In this document: piece by piece, positions 42,938-51,792 of the stretch | Numbering within the stretch: position 1 is the stretch's first letter | Layout of the letters: the number at the start of each line of letters is the position of its first letter | NCBI GenBank assembly: GCA_964035545.1 | Contig: OZ037768.1 | Location: forward strand, 20,381,700-20,445,699 | Source of the DNA: Bugula neritina | Lineage: Eukaryota > Animalia > Bryozoa | DNA: 64,000 bases | Reading direction: 5' to 3' | Made by a program: the position numbers and the translations under genes | Notes under the pieces: generated by a model | What the model was told of the DNA's origin: nothing | Seen by the model: the letters and a program-made list of their open reading frames with translations, nothing else | Database searches by the model: none

Positions 42938-44691
42938 ATGGATATTATATACAGAAAATATGACGACCTACTGCAGTTAGTCCTCTCTGAAGCGGACCCA
43001 AGGTCGAGGCACTGGCTGCTAGTTAATGACTCACCTATCTATGTATGGATATGCACTTTGTGCTACCTTGTCTTTGTCCTTTGGCTCGGGCCAAAGTTCA
43101 TGAGGCACAGGGAAGCATTTGTATTACGACCTTTTATGATAGTATATAATTCTTTTCTGGTGCTGCTCTCTCTATACATGGTTGTGGAGATTCTGTACAG
43201 CTTCTACCTGAATGACTACCATCCAATATGTCAGCCATTCAATAGCAAAACTGCTCACTTGAAACCAACGGAGCTGAGAATGGCAAAGGTGTGTTTATTT
43301 AATACCTAATTCTATAGCATAATGCTGGCAAAGAAACTGTTTTGTCCCCCCCCCCCCTTCTTTCAAAAAGCCCAAATATTAAGCCCTCTTTGCAGCGGAA
43401 ACACTTAGGGTGCCTGGTTTTCTGTCTAGACTCTAGAGTCTAGACATTGTTGGGTAAAACATTACTTGAAAGGAATTGTCTTCTTAAGAAACCCAAAATT
43501 ACCTGATGATTACTAAACATCTCTCTTTGTTAGCTTTCTTATGTATCAGTGAAATCAAAACAGGCATTTTGATGGACCCTGGTAATATGTTCTACGATAC
43601 TGAGAAAGAGCTGAAATATTTTCTTTCATAAACTGATTTTAGTTTTCAATACCACAGGATGTTTGCTGATGCGCGTATCTCTGGTGGGTTTAGAGCTAGA
43701 CGATGAAAAGTCTAGTGTTTTGCAATGCTTTCGAAAATTGAGGAATTGACTGTCAAATTGATGCAGTGTACCACAACTCCAATGTTTATTTTTGTAATAT
43801 ATGCACACATTTATATAAAAAAAATGATTTATAGAAGATGATTTACATTCGTATTAATATGTTATCTTCTGCCACCCAAATAGGACAAAGCCAGTGAAAT
43901 GTTACAAATTTTTTAGGTTATCTCTTTTGTACATTGTGCCATGTTTTTTTTTAATTTGTTAAAATTTCACTGCCATATAATTAGCCAAAGCTATTTTTCA
44001 TTTCTGAGCCATGTTACTTTGGGCAGATTTTTTATGTTGAGCTACGTATTTCATACCATGCTTTCTTTTCAGTCTTTATGGTATATTGTACAGTCTACTT
44101 GCCTACCCTTGAAAATTATAGTGTCTGTAATATATCATCTCACTTTGTGTATATATTTTCCAGGCACTTTGGTGGTATTTCTTCTCCAAAGTAATAGAGT
44201 TTACAGACACGGTGCTGATGGTCTTACGAAAGAAAGACTCGCAGATTACATTCTTACATGTCTTCCACCACGCCTCCATGCTAAACATATGGTGGTTCAC
44301 CATTATCCTCATTCCTGGAGGGCAGGGCTGGCTGGCGTCTAGTCTCAACTCCTTCGTACACGTGATTATGTACAGCTACTACCTCTTCAACCTGTTTCCT
44401 TCTCTGCGACCCTACCTCTGGTGGAAGAAGTACATCACCCAGTTGCAGCTCACCCAGTTTGTCATCATACTTGTGCACACCTGTAACACCTACATCTCCG
44501 GCTGTGATTTTCCTGTCTGGTCTGTCCTCATGCTCGCTGCCTATATGTTTATTATGATTTTCTTATTTGGTAATTTTTATATCAAATCTTACCTCAACAA
44601 ACCCAAGAAGTCACAGCTAAACGGCAATCACAGCAGCATGTCTAATGGCAAAGTTAATAGTCATAGCAAGTCTAATGGCAAAGTAGAATAA
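42938..44691 (+). CDS. ELOVL2/5: Fatty-acid elongase of the Elovl2/5 (PUFA elongase) clade, 2 coding exons, 292 aa
   Basis: Exons 42938-43288 and 44164-44691 (phase 0, AAG|gtgtgt...ttccag|GCA). ELO motifs DPR...W, GPKFM..R, WWYFFSKVIEFTDT (KxxExxDT), QITFLHVFHHASMLNIWW (HxxHH; HHASMxNIWW is characteristic of ELOVL2/5), NSFVHVIMYSYY, WWKKYITQLQLTQF, LFGNFY. Confidence 0.93.
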
Positions 44692-45228: not shown

Positions 45229-46489
45229 GGTTCAAAAACTTTGACTGAACAAGCACTCAAATTTCAAACTTTAGTGGTGCACATTCCAAGTAACCAGCAA
45301 CATCGATTATCGCTTAACATTACTTAATAATTATTTAAATCTCTGTTTCTAGATATTTACAAACCTCGTCTTACATAAGTATGAGCATCAATAGAATGTT
45401 ATAAAACCAAATCTATTGCAACTATATTTTTGTGCCACTACCATTCAACTCATCACTGTAATGTGCATGACACTAAATAAAGATATTTCATTGAACTTTA
45501 CATATAATACTATTACAATCACGTTGACAAGTGGCACGGAAAAAGTTTTTTGTGCCAGGAAAGAAATTTGTAGGTGATCCATTTGAAATAAACATCCTGA
45601 TCAATTTAGTCTATGAATTATAGTATTCAGCTCAATTTTCTTGCAAAGATCTTGAGCACTGTTTGATCTAACCAGTAATATATTTTGAAACAAAATTTCT
45701 TCAATATATTTCGAAAACTGCTGCAGTATAAGTTGAAACTGCAGCTTTTAGATGGAGCAGCCAATTTATCCTTAGAGAGCCCCTAACTGACCTAAATGAT
45801 AGACTTGGTGTTGTTGCTTATGCGGTGCGTGATTATATATATGTAATGTATGTATTGTTTGTCAAACCACTGTTCTGTTTACAATGAAATAGCAGTTTGC
45901 CTTTGTAGTGATTTGTAATATAAAATAAATGCAATTTAATTGTTGAAAATTTGAAATCCGAGAGAAAACAACTCTTCCAAACTTTTTTATTGCGAGTATT
46001 GGTTTTAGCATAAGGAATTATCTTTTCTATTGAGAAAATAAAATATTTGAACAATGATAATGTATTTAGAAAAAAATTATTATTAATTATATAGTTTACC
46101 AATAATATTGGGTAATAAACCACCACCCAAAATAAAAATTGATTTCAAATATTATTATTTCCTAAGCGCTAAGTAATAGCAGATCCGTATCGCAGTAAAA
46201 CCTAGGCGGATCGTGGTTGTATCGCTGCTAAGTAAAATAACTACTAATCTATGATAATCAATAAGACTAATCATAAATCAACGTAGTACTACTAGTACTA
46301 CTAGTACTGCTTTTATTAATTGTAAAAACCATTAATTACTGCTAGCTAAAATTTGCAATAAATTTTAAAATTTGCGCAAAAATACTTATTGATACATTTG
46401 CTGCTTATAAATATTAATATAGTTATATACTTATACTTTAGTACGGGAAAAGTCAGCAACAATTTGAATCACTTTCAATCAGTATCAAC

Positions 46490-49400
46490 ATGTCAGCCTC
46501 AGTCTCAGGTACAGACTCAGAATAAAAATGATTAACACTATCACTACCTGTCGAACTCGATGAAAATCATAATCATGTTATAACCTCTGTTGTTAATGTT
46601 ACTGTATTAGCAATAGCAGACAATCACAATGACAATGATTTCATTAATTATGGTTATTTGTGGCGCCGAAGCAAAACGTAGAATTACTCAATTAGATACT
46701 AAATGTAAAGCTTAATCTTACAGATATACTTATAATAATAGTAATACTAATTATATTTTATCATAGAAATATATTTACAATGAACTATGATCTACCAGTT
46801 TGACACGAGAACTATGAATTTCGATCTTGTTTATTTTTATGATTGATTTTAGATTTACTTTTATTTTTAAAACATGTTGATGTTGAATTTAAATTATATT
46901 AGATCCGGAATAAATAAAGCATTGTCTTGTTTACCATCACAGAACTAATTGAACTTTTTTTATAACTAAAGCTCTTTAAGTGTTTTGGTACACTAAGAAA
47001 GCTGCAGTTTGGATGGATTTATAACTATATTGACATTGTGATTGTAATTGTAGCCACAAAAGAAAAAAATGTTAGAAAAGCAAAAGAAAAGACTGTTAAG
47101 AAACATGGTATGTCATTTTATTCATGTTGAAATTTGAATTTATTAATTTTATATTATTTGCTGTTGATTCTGATAATATTTTATTTAACAGGTTGGGGTT
47201 ATTGTATTTGAAGGTTACTGAATTGAAATGCATCAAGTTTTATCTAGATCACCCAAAATACTGTAAATAATACATAAAGAGCTTAATAGTAAAAGTTGAA
47301 TATGTGATCTAGCTTTATTTAAGAATTTTTAATTTATCCATTTAATACTGATCTCAAACTGATTTTCTTTTTAATGACATTTTAAACTTGTCAATAGAAA
47401 CTCATTAGTACAAAGTTTTTATGCTTGTAAAAGTATATTTAATATAATTATAGGATTTATTTTGAACAGCATACTAAAATTTAGGTTAGTAATCCTGTGT
47501 GATTTGTGATATTGTTGAGATATCTGCAAATTAAATTGATTCAATAGACTATTGGTGCTTCATGAATTTTAGACATTACTTAAAAAAGTTATTTTTGCTC
47601 TATGTCCAAGGGCTAAATATTTATTTCAGTTAATTAGTTTTTTACAACCAATTTTATGTAAATGCTTATTTTTAAAGCATGATGTTTATGTTTTTGGATT
47701 TGATCTTTCAATTTTCTAGAATCTAGTAGATTGATATATGAAACCTGTTCTTGTATGACTGAAAACCAAAATTGCCTGTAAACTAAGGGCTATTAATATA
47801 TCAGATGTGTTTTTACCTTCGTATGTTTTACTTAGGCTAACTCTATTAATTTTTTTATAATTTTATAGATTGATTAAATTCTGGCATTAACTTTAAAAAC
47901 AGCATTTCTTTATGGATTCTAATTTTACATGCTTCAGCTGTCAGCAAAAGTGAACAAAACCTGCAGCTGCTTCTGAAGTCAGAGTTGGATGACACAAAGG
48001 AGAAAGAACTTGAAGATGCTATAGCAAAGTGCAAAAGTGATGGATTGAGTGCCAAGTCTAGTGAAATATTAGCAAAGGCTGAGCGAGAACTTAGCATTAT
48101 TAAAGCAAGAGAAAAGAAAGTAACTAATAAACTTTCTTAAATTTTTAATAATTTTAGGTATTTAAAAGCATTTTTTCATGAAATTGATCAAACTGAAAAA
48201 TCCTTGATTTTTCATTACAGCTTGGCTAGTTTATTTGATGAATTAGTTTCAATATGTGATGAAGTCACAACAGCAGGTTTATGAGTTTATATATGCTTGT
48301 ACTTACTATAATCAGTATATACCGTGTGGTCTGTAATGCAATGAACAGTAGGTATATGGATTATATATTATATTATATATATTATGTTGCAGTTCCTTAA
48401 ACAGCTACCATGGATGGGAGCTGGAGAGAATTCTCTTTCTGAGGGTTTCATGCTGGAGAGAATGGGTGAGCTCATTTGTTGTAGCAGTTAGCTTTTATAT
48501 TAACTATCCATGACAAACAGGAGAATGCAATTCTTAATTGTTTGGTTTGGAATTTTTTAATAATATATAATTACTCTTTTGCATAAATTATCTATTCCTA
48601 AGTGCTATGATGAAAACTTTTCAAATTATGAGCGTATTAAATAAGACAATTTTTGTATTTTGTAAGTTTTAATTGAAAAGTTATCTTTCTAACGCCATGT
48701 TTACATTTTCAATTTTTTTTTGTTGCATCTGTATGTTATGTTTCATATTTTTATTATTCTTACAGTGCTACATAGGTTATAATACTATTATAGTGCTACA
48801 TTGGTTATAATACTATTACAGCTCTGCGTGGGTTATAATACTATTACAGCGCTACATGGGTTATAATACTATTATAGCTCTGCGTGGGTGTATGTCCCAA
48901 AGTGCAGGTTCTCTTGAGAGTACAATAAACAAAGCCAAGAGTGTGAAGCATCGTGGGAAGCTAGACGCTGATATTGGTGATGCCCAGCGTAGATTGCAGG
49001 TACAGTCAGGCTACAGATCACCAGTCTAGGCTAAGTTTCTACACCAGCTTTTTGTTATAAAAAGTTAAAATTTGAAACTTTCTTGCATCCTATGTTTATT
49101 AGAGATTTCCAATAATAGTTTTATTGCTGATGATTAAATAACTAGTAACTCAGCATAGTACTTAAATATATGTAATTTGTGCTGATGAAGTTACCTAGTA
49201 GTCCTTGTAGTGTAATAGTTAGCACGGCAGCTTGCAAGAGGTCTACAGGTTTGAATCCCAGTGGCCACAAATGTTTTGCTAGCTATTTTGGCCTTTAGAG
49301 TAGTAGTAGTAGTAGTACTCCGAGGTAGTTGAGAGGCCAGGGGGCTTAAAAACTGAAGGAGTAGTAAGAGGGGGGAGGGGACAATTATTTTACGTATTTA

Positions 49401-49635
49401 AGTTACAAATTCAGCATCAGTCCAGATTCTGGGACTCACCAGCTTGGATTATAATTATTGTTAGCACTTACAACTGGGAGATCAGATGAAAGAACCTGTC
49501 CTCAATATGGATAAGAAAATGTGGGAAGAGATGACATCATTCTCTCAACCACCCGCAGACGTGGAAAGAGTGATGAAAGCAGTTTTGCTGTTGCTGGGCA
49601 ACACAGAGAAGGATGTGAGAGTATGTAGTAAAAGT

Positions 49636-49666
<31 letters not shown>

Positions 49667-49683
49667 ATTGTATCGTGAGATTT

Positions 49684-49714
<31 letters not shown>

Positions 49715-49843
49715 CAGCGGATAAAAAAGTGCTCAAATTATTATGTGTATAATAATGAGCAATTATATTATTGAGGAAAAGAGCAATTTAATTATATAGA
49801 TGTTGTTTTATTGCACTACTAATAGTTTCATGCCTCTTCGGCA

Positions 49844-49911
<68 letters not shown>

Positions 49912-51792
49912 TTATCTTATTAATATTAATAAATTGTATATATGTATATATATTTTTTCTGTATGAGTTGCATACATTTTATGATGAATAGTATTACAAC
50001 CTTCTAACCTTCCGTTTACTATTTTTATACAGATATCCAACACAATTATTTAAAATTACACAATATTGATGCTGGTATTTGTTTATATTGTGAAATTGTA
50101 AACATCTCATGACATATGCTGCGTGTCAAAACATCTTGGCAAAGGAATTTGCTGCAAACATGTGATTGATTCGTTTTAGTTAAACTTACCCATTTTACAC
50201 CGATCAAAATATTTTTTAGAATTGGAGTTTAATAAAAAAGCATTTTGAAAAAGCTAATCAAACGGCTTTAAAAGAAAAGATAAGAAACTTCCAAGTGACT
50301 CATCTAACAACTGCCATGAAGGAAAGCGTGTCGGAAGTTCTGGAGCCAATAGGTGATAAGCAGGCGGGGTCTCTCATTCCTGGAGCAGCTACCTTCTTTG
50401 ACTGGGTAAGCTTCGTTCTTAAGGTTCTATATAGCTTTTATTTCATCAGCATTCAAAGCAGTTACATTCAGTTATTGACTTCAAAAATGGCTTCTTCTAG
50501 CAGTTACCTGTAGTTTATAAAAACCAAATCATGGAACATGGCTTTAAATTGAAAAAAGTAAAACGTCTTCTTGCACTTTACGTACTCACAATGAGAGTAA
50601 TCAGATGCTGACCTAATATTCAGATGTTGACCTAGTAGTCAAATGCTGACCTAGTATTCAGATGCTGACCTAGTAGTCAAATGCTGACCTGGTATTCAGA
50701 TGCTGACCTAGCAGTCAGATGTTGACCTAGAAGTCAGATGCTGACCTAGCAGTCAGATGCTGACCTAGTATTCAGATGCTGACCTAGCAGTCAGATGTTG
50801 ACCTAGAAGTCAGATGCTGACCTAGCAGTCAGATGCTGACCTAGTATTCAGATGTTGACCTAGCAGTCAGATGCTGACCTAGTATTCAGATGTTGACCTA
50901 GCAGTCAGATGCTGACCTAGCAGTCAGATGTTGACCTAATAGTCAGTGAAGTAGTGAACCTCCACTCTCCAAGCATTCAAGTGTTTACTCGGTGGAAAAA
51001 TACATTGTATAAAATATTATGCAATAGCTAACATTGGTATTAAGTTTATACTCTTGCATGTTATGAGGATGCTGAGGCTATAATTATACCCTGATAGTGA
51101 TGCTTGCTGTGAAGATCAAACTGAAACTTAAAGGAAGTTCGGCCCACATGTAGTTCATCTTATGCAGGCTTAGAATGTTGTTCAAACGGTGTCCTGTATT
51201 TTAATCCTATGGATATTCTAGTTAGTGGTATCCTCTCTCTGCTTTTCCTAGATATTCACCTCAGCAACTGCTGTTAGTAGGACTTACATTGGCAGCGTTA
51301 TGTTTCTCTATTTTACATAGGCCTAAATTGTACCTGCCCATGATAAAATGGTTTTAGCGTCTTCTTATTAGGAGTTATCTTCTCAAAAAGTTTGAAATCG
51401 CCAAAATATTATTATATATTGGAGTTTCTTAAACCATTCACACCATTTCGTTGTGGTTGCAGTTTGCATTAACTTATGGTTCATTCCATGCAACTGTTCC
51501 CAAACCTCGAATGAAAAATTCATTTGCATAATGCAAGCAATGGAAATACAGTGCTAGGTTGCTTAAACCCATCACTCTCAGCTCAAAGTGGCCTGTAACT
51601 TGTTCAAAGCTTTTAGATTGACTCCAAACAACTTAGGCCCGTAATATGTGTCCTCTCTAACACAATTATTGTATGTTTAGTTAGTATTAGCTGCTATTGA
51701 AGAAGAATTAAGTACTGCGATGTTTGATTGATGTTTTTTAAAATCTTCTGTTTTAGTGTGTCTCTATGCTAGAGCATGCTGAAGCGTATTAA
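46490..51792 (+). CDS. Uncharacterised 275-aa protein: basic N-terminus, helical/coiled region and C-terminal dynein heavy-chain microtubule-binding-domain-like module
   Basis: Exons 46490-46508, 47054-47107, 47938-48119, 48393-48465, 48878-48999, 49465-49620, 50220-50405, 51757-51792. All GT-AG and phase-compatible (828 nt), with start context aacATG, stop TAA and AATAAA at 51997. C-terminus VLNMDKKMWEEMTSFSQPPADVERVMKAVLLLLG...NWSLIKK...KIRNF...GAATFFDWCVSM follows the dynein stalk-head pattern. The first two exons are less certain than the last six. Confidence 0.82.
48761..48888. repeat. 28-bp tandem repeat x4.6 ending in a real splice acceptor
   Basis: Units taYag...ggttataatactat at 48761, 48789, 48817, 48845 and 48873. 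The last YAG (48875-48877) is the only frame-preserving acceptor. Confidence 0.92.
49201..49318 (+). mobile_element. Degenerate tRNA-derived SINE head with (AGT)n tail
   Basis: A-box-like tagtgtaatagttagca and B-box-like ggtttgaatccc at tRNA-like spacing, but no intact cloverleaf. Followed by gtagtagtagtagtagta. No TSD recognised. Confidence 0.55.
49847..49907. repeat. (TA)n microsatellite (plus poly-A run at about 49688-49713)
   Basis: Direct reading; intronic. Confidence 0.95.
50602..50946. repeat. 19-bp minisatellite (cagatgYtgacctagYaKt) x~18
   Basis: Direct reading; head-to-tail with no unique spacers, in the last intron of the MTBD-like gene. Confidence 0.97.

Follow-up and report, generated by a model that had tools for sequence, protein, structure and literature searches.

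A predicted motor-less gene of Bugula neritina ends in a dynein stalk-tip-like domain and most likely derives from the tail of a hillarin/KY-like paralog

Dynein's microtubule-binding domain (MTBD), which sits at the stalk tip of its heavy chain, is usually treated as a part of the motor only. What, then, would such a domain do at the end of a small protein that has no motor? This question is raised by a 64,000-nt window of the bryozoan Bugula neritina (assembly GCA_964035545.1, 216 Mb; contig OZ037768.1, here C4, positions 20,381,700-20,445,699), in which an original prediction placed a gene for a 275-amino-acid (aa) protein with a C-terminal MTBD-like module. Rebuilding the model from the sequence gave eight phase-compatible exons (E1 to E8, all on the plus strand; positions are those of the window) totaling 828 nt, or 275 aa plus stop, with GT-AG introns throughout and without an internal stop, in agreement with that prediction. 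We consider it highly probable that this gene is coding, that it belongs to a family of proteins sharing the same tail, that the family has the dynein MTBD fold, and that its closest paralog is a hillarin/KY-like gene on the same chromosome. The domain thus appears here as a mobile module that ends hillarin/KY-like as well as short proteins.

The C-terminal ~120 aa singled out by the original prediction correspond to E6-E8. E6 (49465..49620) encodes the end of a helix resembling coiled-coil 1 (CC1) of the dynein stalk, followed by MTBD-like helices H1-H2; E7 (50220..50405), the most divergent part, encodes H3-H6 and the start of a CC2-like helix; and E8 (51757..51792), which is homologous to the last exon of the paralog, encodes the short CC2-like helix and the stop codon. 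Searched alone against the PDB, E6 returned 17 matches, all of them dynein stalk tips and each weak (E 0.02-1.5), while E7 returned none, and single exons gave nothing useful against Pfam. The Pfam family PF12777 (MT), against which the module was to have been checked, has a membership cut-off of 24 bits; it matched no single exon at E<=10, and its genome scan (E<=0.5) recorded 59 places, this locus not among them. We also aligned 19 full-domain members of the tail family, with no dynein row included (alignment A7). The resulting profile matched only dynein MTBDs in the PDB, over their full length and with a best E of 4e-9; PF12777 itself matches four of these 19 homologs (best E 6e-4). In hhalign comparisons, E3 (47938..48119), E5 (48878..48999), E6 and E7 mapped in order to successive parts of the family profile (E 3.6e-5, 7.5e-4, 2.1e-12 and 8.1e-9, respectively), with E6 scoring 97.7% and E7 95.8%, so that helical repeats are followed by the MTBD-like domain in the order that defines the family. 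Ten of the 14 columns invariant among the 19 members are kept here, and four are changed (Tyr to Phe, Gly to Asn, Ser to Ile and Val to Asp). The predicted product is a divergent member of this tail family.

Structural evidence was obtained from a homolog. An AlphaFold model of the annelid protein P0026 (predicted local distance difference test score 88) aligned with the dynein structure 5ayh in VIA-align at Z 16.4 over 140 residues (root-mean-square deviation 3.9), where unrelated rows score ~7, and matched 6rzb in Foldseek with a probability of 1.0. The MTBD-like character of the module, and the AlphaFold and Foldseek comparison proposed for checking it, are thereby borne out at the level of the family. 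Because the exon-to-profile matches are near gap-free, the fold was carried over to this gene, and we infer that the window protein would adopt the six-helix MTBD fold, with H1-H6 between CC1 and CC2. InterPro's Gene3D dynein-MTBD superfamily presumably flags such tails automatically. As in dynein (PF12777; 5ayh, 3err, 6kio, 6rzb), two antiparallel helices would carry the six helices at their tip. Unlike dynein, the gene lacks an AAA ring and a linker, as originally predicted, and a long stalk as well; its CC2 spans only ~11 residues, and the domain falls below Pfam detection.

Where did this gene come from? The original prediction had raised, with a request for checking, a link to hillarin/KY-like tails, and this link proved correct. 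The best database relatives of E6 are the tails of transglutaminase-fold plus Ig-like_KY proteins (P0004, P0007), and within the genome itself a complete gene of hillarin/KY-like type gives the best match, at C4:19.90-19.91 Mb, 0.53 Mb away on the same chromosome. This paralog has an MG-start, then transglutaminase-fold and Ig exons (three PF23265 places at C4:19.906-19.907 Mb), a charged linker and the same tail. Its tail exons are 35% (E3), 49% (E5, over 35 aa), 43% (E6) and 26% (E7) identical to those of the window gene, and phase-0 introns before E6, E7 and the last exon are common to both. Of ~160 fetched sequences, none matched E3, E5 or E7 better than the paralog did, and in the E5 tree it was sister to the window copy with support of 97/95. 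The end branch of E7 was 9.1 long, against a median of 0.39. The best-supported origin is that the gene most likely arose as a partial duplicate of the paralog's tail. Relative to lophotrochozoan hillarin/KY/LTD-1-like proteins (P0004, P0007 and the paralog), the helical repeats, the MTBD-like domain, the short last helix and the introns around E6 and E7 are alike, whereas the MG-start lipid-anchor-like motif, PF01841 and PF23265 are missing here, E4 is extra and H3-H6 have diverged strongly. In genome-wide scans, whose counts are lower bounds, PF01841 (transglutaminase-like core) had no match in the window or near the locus, and PF23265 (Ig-like_KY) had at least 17 places in the genome, none of them inside the window. 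The transglutaminase-fold and Ig-like_KY exons of the paralog thus have no counterpart near this gene. Another protein, P0009, shares a Trp in H1 and was considered as an ortholog; its 1.2-kb contig is too short to judge. Just downstream of the paralog lies a small two-exon MTBD-like piece (L008 660-1522; C4:19893660-19894522, minus strand) with a more dynein-like H6.

Coding status was examined by comparison with other Bugula sequences. The introns diverge by 4-8% from those of GCA_010799875.2 and of two JGI Bugula samples, so these were taken as sister lineages usable as an outgroup for selection tests. A near-identical database protein (P0001; EB796_010604 of Bugula neritina, GCA_010799875.2; 94%) is found there. 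Against the sister lineage, E2-E8 carry 25 synonymous and 19 non-synonymous changes, a non-synonymous to synonymous ratio (pN/pS) of 0.20 (p 1e-7), which indicates purifying selection on the gene. The ratio was 0.05 for E3 (five synonymous changes and one non-synonymous against locus L024, three and none against L025), 0.19 for E5-E8 jointly (p 7e-6) and 0.31 for E7 (p 0.055). E6 had five synonymous changes and three conservative Leu-Met changes, E8 had two synonymous changes in the other assembly with the stop kept as TAA or TGA, and E2 had four non-synonymous changes and no synonymous one. Two of the three changes in E4 are synonymous, in the originally predicted frame only. No stop or frameshift was seen in the exons compared in any haplotype. 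In E7, five of the six non-synonymous changes against the sister lineage fall within ten codons around H6 (post-hoc p 6e-4), and H6, with four clustered residue differences between sister lineages, is the fastest-changing part.

Does the module carry the means to bind tubulin as dynein does? The yeast MTBD forms six salt bridges with tubulin, through K3117, E3122, R3124, R3152, R3159 and R3201, and loss of any of the basic residues lowers affinity more than 2-fold (PMC7042235). In profile alignments, the window copy keeps two of the six (the equivalents of K3117 and E3122) and has Thr, Ser, Glu and Ser in place of R3124, R3152, R3159 and R3201. The net charge of E6-E8 is -3, compared with +6 for E6-E7 of the paralog, so that neither the full set of salt-bridge residues nor a basic surface is present. 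A Ser in H6 that occurs in all 114 family motifs is Ile here, and a basic residue of H1 found in 78 of 83 is Thr here. Across the family, Asp predominates at the position of R3201 (87/114) and Arg at the residue before it (97/114), and even typical members may bind differently from dynein. The landmarks listed in the original prediction (PP, VM.AV, W, F, AA, W..M) belong for the most part to the core of the fold. The pattern is one of a conserved fold core with drifting tubulin-facing helices. This gene is seemingly the least promising member of its family for canonical microtubule binding; its interest would lie in a duplicated tail that is being retuned.

Because the fold core is conserved while the tubulin-facing helices drift, we favor an adaptor over a competitor for dynein's site. 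In this model, partial duplication of the paralog's tail would have yielded a small non-enzymatic protein, in which a Lys-rich N-terminus is followed by two helical repeats, then by a CC1-like helix, the six-helix MTBD fold and a very short CC2. Having lost the lipid-anchor motif of its parent along with the transglutaminase-fold and Ig domains, the product would be a soluble cytoskeletal adaptor. Its retuned MTBD fold would serve mainly as a protein-docking surface, or would bind microtubules weakly and non-canonically with help from the basic N-terminus, and it would not be a tight binder of dynein's tubulin site. We assign this reading, a soluble adaptor that docks another protein or binds microtubules weakly, a probability of about 0.5.

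A number of observations weigh against it. Searches and alignments were run exon by exon, and the evidence for the fold comes from homologs rather than from the window protein. The per-exon trees of E6 and E7 leave the sister relation unresolved, and for E6 other proteins among the fetched sequences outscore the paralog. The only run holding the locus consists of DNA-like contigs, and two metagenome scans gave no match. H3 keeps three Lys, as in the alternative H3 contacts of Dictyostelium dynein (PMC7042235), and each single loss in yeast is reported just as a >2-fold drop in affinity (PMC7042235). Loss of these residues is also compatible with binding, because the MTBD-like domain of Toxoplasma attaches to microtubules in a way that differs from dynein's.

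The proposal first made for this locus was an ATP-independent binder at dynein's tubulin site that acts as a static microtubule-associated protein or competitor and is possibly ciliary. It draws on the full MTBD fold of the family and on the retention of residues equivalent to K3117 and E3122, and extra affinity could come from the Lys-rich E2; moreover, an isolated 137-residue yeast MTBD binds with a dissociation constant of 6.7 uM, so that a short-stalk MTBD is able to act by itself (PMC7042235). Opposed to it are the four changed basic positions, the net acidic domain and the four clustered H6 differences between sister lineages, and nothing in the analysis points to cilia specifically. The proposal fared poorly on these grounds and we regard it as unlikely. 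We give similarly low odds to a wider form of it, in which an animal family, undescribed though widespread, uses the fold without a motor, either fused to transglutaminase-fold, EF-hand/coil or other heads or standing alone, and the unattached, soluble copy of the bryozoan occupies dynein's site on the microtubule lattice or a place close to it. There it would serve as a brake or competitor independent of ATP, with its H6 contact helix under active retuning.

A doubtful alternative of about the same standing is that the detached tail acts as a decoy or regulator of its parent, binding the parent's partners, or the parent itself via the helical repeats, and so modulating a cortical or cytoskeletal complex. 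The gene keeps exactly the parent's tail at 0.53 Mb on the same chromosome, and E3 (35% identity to the parent) and E5 (49%) show strong constraint. E7, however, is the exon least like the parent at 26%, and E4 or a repeat-derived insert interrupts the helical repeats.

It is improbable, though worth setting out, that the gene is a young decaying duplicate, or that mis-splicing at a repeated E5 acceptor leaves the MTBD part rarely translated. A variable 28-bp tandem repeat (48760..48889), with 4.6 copies here, ~3.5 in GCA_010799875.2 and ~11 in L024, duplicates the E5 splice acceptor. After E4, the frame stays open from the last repeat AG only; stops follow from every repeat acceptor but the last, and also from the acceptor at 48765, which comes first and is the richest in pyrimidines. 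The decay view also gains from the E7 ratio, and from a transposon in intron 4 of the other assembly. Against it stand the constraint on E5-E8, the lack of any stop or frameshift in the compared exons and the retained stop codon. The transposon-like DNA was observed at a contig end (L020 1-2770), and accounts for the 129-aa fragment called by NCBI and for a PET/LIM model that starts inside exon 8. The repeat with its duplicated acceptors offers a natural test of 3' splice-site choice.

Finally, although the sequence and fold resemble dynein stalk tips, a broken piece of a dynein heavy chain can largely be dismissed, as PF12777 finds 59 places in the genome but not this one, the introns agree with those of the hillarin-like paralog and differ from those of the single Bugula dynein that was compared, helical repeats of the family make up the exons upstream, and the gene is flanked by ELOVL and PET/LIM genes.

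Turning to the rest of the gene model, E2 (47054..47107) encodes a Lys-rich charged linker whose splice sites are kept in L024, and the paralog likewise has a charged phase-1 exon ahead of its helical repeat. E3 encodes the first helical repeat of the family tail, and E5 the second, running into the CC1-like helix. Between them, E4 (48393..48465) is a lineage-specific insert of 24 codons that the paralog lacks; it is single copy in the genome, its splice sites are conserved, and it had no match to the family profile. The paralog splices its E3-like exon straight to its E5-like exon in phase 1. In the window gene the donor is shifted downstream by 5 nt and is in phase 0, with the frame restored by E4 or by the 48849 acceptor. 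We considered the 5-nt duplication at the end of E3 as a frameshift or assembly error, with E4 as its repair, and rejected this as the main reading because two other Bugula samples share the E3 length and phase-0 donor and because the changes in E4 favor the originally predicted frame. An alternative that omits E4 and joins E3 to the 48849 acceptor would give 260 aa and is open in both assemblies. E1 (46490..46508) is a putative first coding exon (Met plus five codons, phase-1 donor). Although no other candidate ATG with a phase-1 donor lies within 900 nt of E2, the start Met is the least secure element of the model because the open frame extends back to an AG acceptor at 46440-46441, and E1 may have a 5' exon before it. 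E4, the start codon and the acceptor of E5, which lies within the variable tandem repeat, have the standing of predictions. A protein search with E3 returned genomic calls only. Around exon 1 (window 46345-46607), run X1 shows very high heterozygosity (20 substitutions and nine gap letters in ~260 nt), and intron 7 holds a 19-bp minisatellite of 18.5 copies (window 50596-50946) that is likewise present in the other assembly.

The original prediction described the gene as free-standing and set between other genes, and this holds at the locus. An ELOVL gene (PF01151, E 2e-41) ends upstream at 44691, a PET/LIM gene lies on the downstream side, and an AT-rich 1.8-kb gap on the upstream side contained no matching exon and no dynein exons. 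Barring read-through from a neighbor, the gene thus appears small and free-standing. As to whether it could be part of a larger conventional gene or a decayed dynein, no upstream transglutaminase or Ig exons were seen, and dynein decay was rejected by the PF12777 scan and the intron positions.

The free-standing form is, however, not unique to this gene, since short members without an enzyme domain exist outside Bugula. One of these, P0050 (a spliced contig from SRR26897527), has its open reading frame uninterrupted within a contig of 1,268 nt, and a stop lies in frame upstream of it. Pinctada (FSP39_005809), Lamellibrachia (LSAT2_004330), Ridgeia (NP493_527g02003) and Ciona (LOC100182150, 56 bp after another same-strand gene) have gene models of 206-326 aa, although some short models may be split gene models, of which a Mytilus case is an example. 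These short members (~200-345 aa) resemble the window protein in their charged N-terminus, helical repeats, MTBD-like end and lack of an enzyme domain; they are uncharacterized and differ in that several keep the MG-start, the H6 Ser is kept and nearly all retain the H1 basic residue, and trees do not resolve them as orthologs of the window gene. The ESM Atlas holds mollusc-dominated clusters of "hypothetical" proteins of 154-267 aa, plus an EF-hand-fused form, and the family spans molluscs, annelids, bryozoans, an ascidian and amphioxus. Motor-less MTBD folds and short members of the family are thus already present in databases, and the greater value lies in the link at family level. It opens a direct test of the ways in which proteins of the hillarin type might connect membrane with microtubules, and supplies natural variants for the study of dynein-tubulin recognition. 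No paper on the MTBD-like tail family was found in the literature searched, and the hillarin tail was not described as dynein-like there, most subscription papers lying outside its coverage.

Within the same genome, the module also ends EF-hand/coiled-coil, second transglutaminase-fold and EFCAB5-like genes, in addition to the small gene beside the paralog. The first of these (L012-L013; C4:1515000-1521000, minus strand) combines an EF-hand-like part and a long charged coil with the same helical/MTBD-like tail, and no transglutaminase-fold exons were found within 30 kb upstream. At C8:6501600-6511700 (L018-L019), a second MG-start transglutaminase-fold gene has the MTBD-like domain followed by further exons. 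At its C-terminus, the EFCAB5-like gene (L033; C4:7166073-7169252, minus strand) resembles the tail-family profile at E 9.7e-6 and has a weak match to PDB 9fqr_Xl, an indication that an MTBD-like fold forms the end of EFCAB5.

Motor-less MTBD-like folds were likewise found among PDB entries, namely 9ya2_L (Z 10.3), 9fqr_Xl (Z 9.9) and 7jrj_I (Z 6.9, in the background range), and set a precedent for such folds outside motors. They have the fold without a motor, as the window protein is predicted to; unlike it they are large multidomain proteins, at 9-24% identity. From numbering and size, we infer that 9ya2 chain L is Toxoplasma ICMAP2, an intraconoidal-microtubule protein with a dynein-MTBD-like fold while microtubule-bound, and that 9fqr chain Xl is probably EFCAB5 of radial spoke 3; 7jrj chain I is a Chlamydomonas radial spoke protein. 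The globular domain of ICMAP2 lies between protofilaments with 8-nm periodicity (PMC12819142), and EFCAB5 docks other radial-spoke proteins (PMC11779644). Term searches of the main text of PMC12819142 and of PMC11779644 found no mention of dynein likeness. An "MTBD-like" motif described for TTLL11 (PMC12366701) was set aside as unrelated to the dynein MTBD. P0002, a protein of 937 aa without a motor, has a Hemingway/CFAP97 domain at its N-terminus and five MTBD repeats in tandem, which are PF12777-positive. Contigs C41, C125 and C193 of the assembly hold dynein genes that read through many TAA and TAG codons; these are of ciliate type and were co-assembled with the bryozoan.

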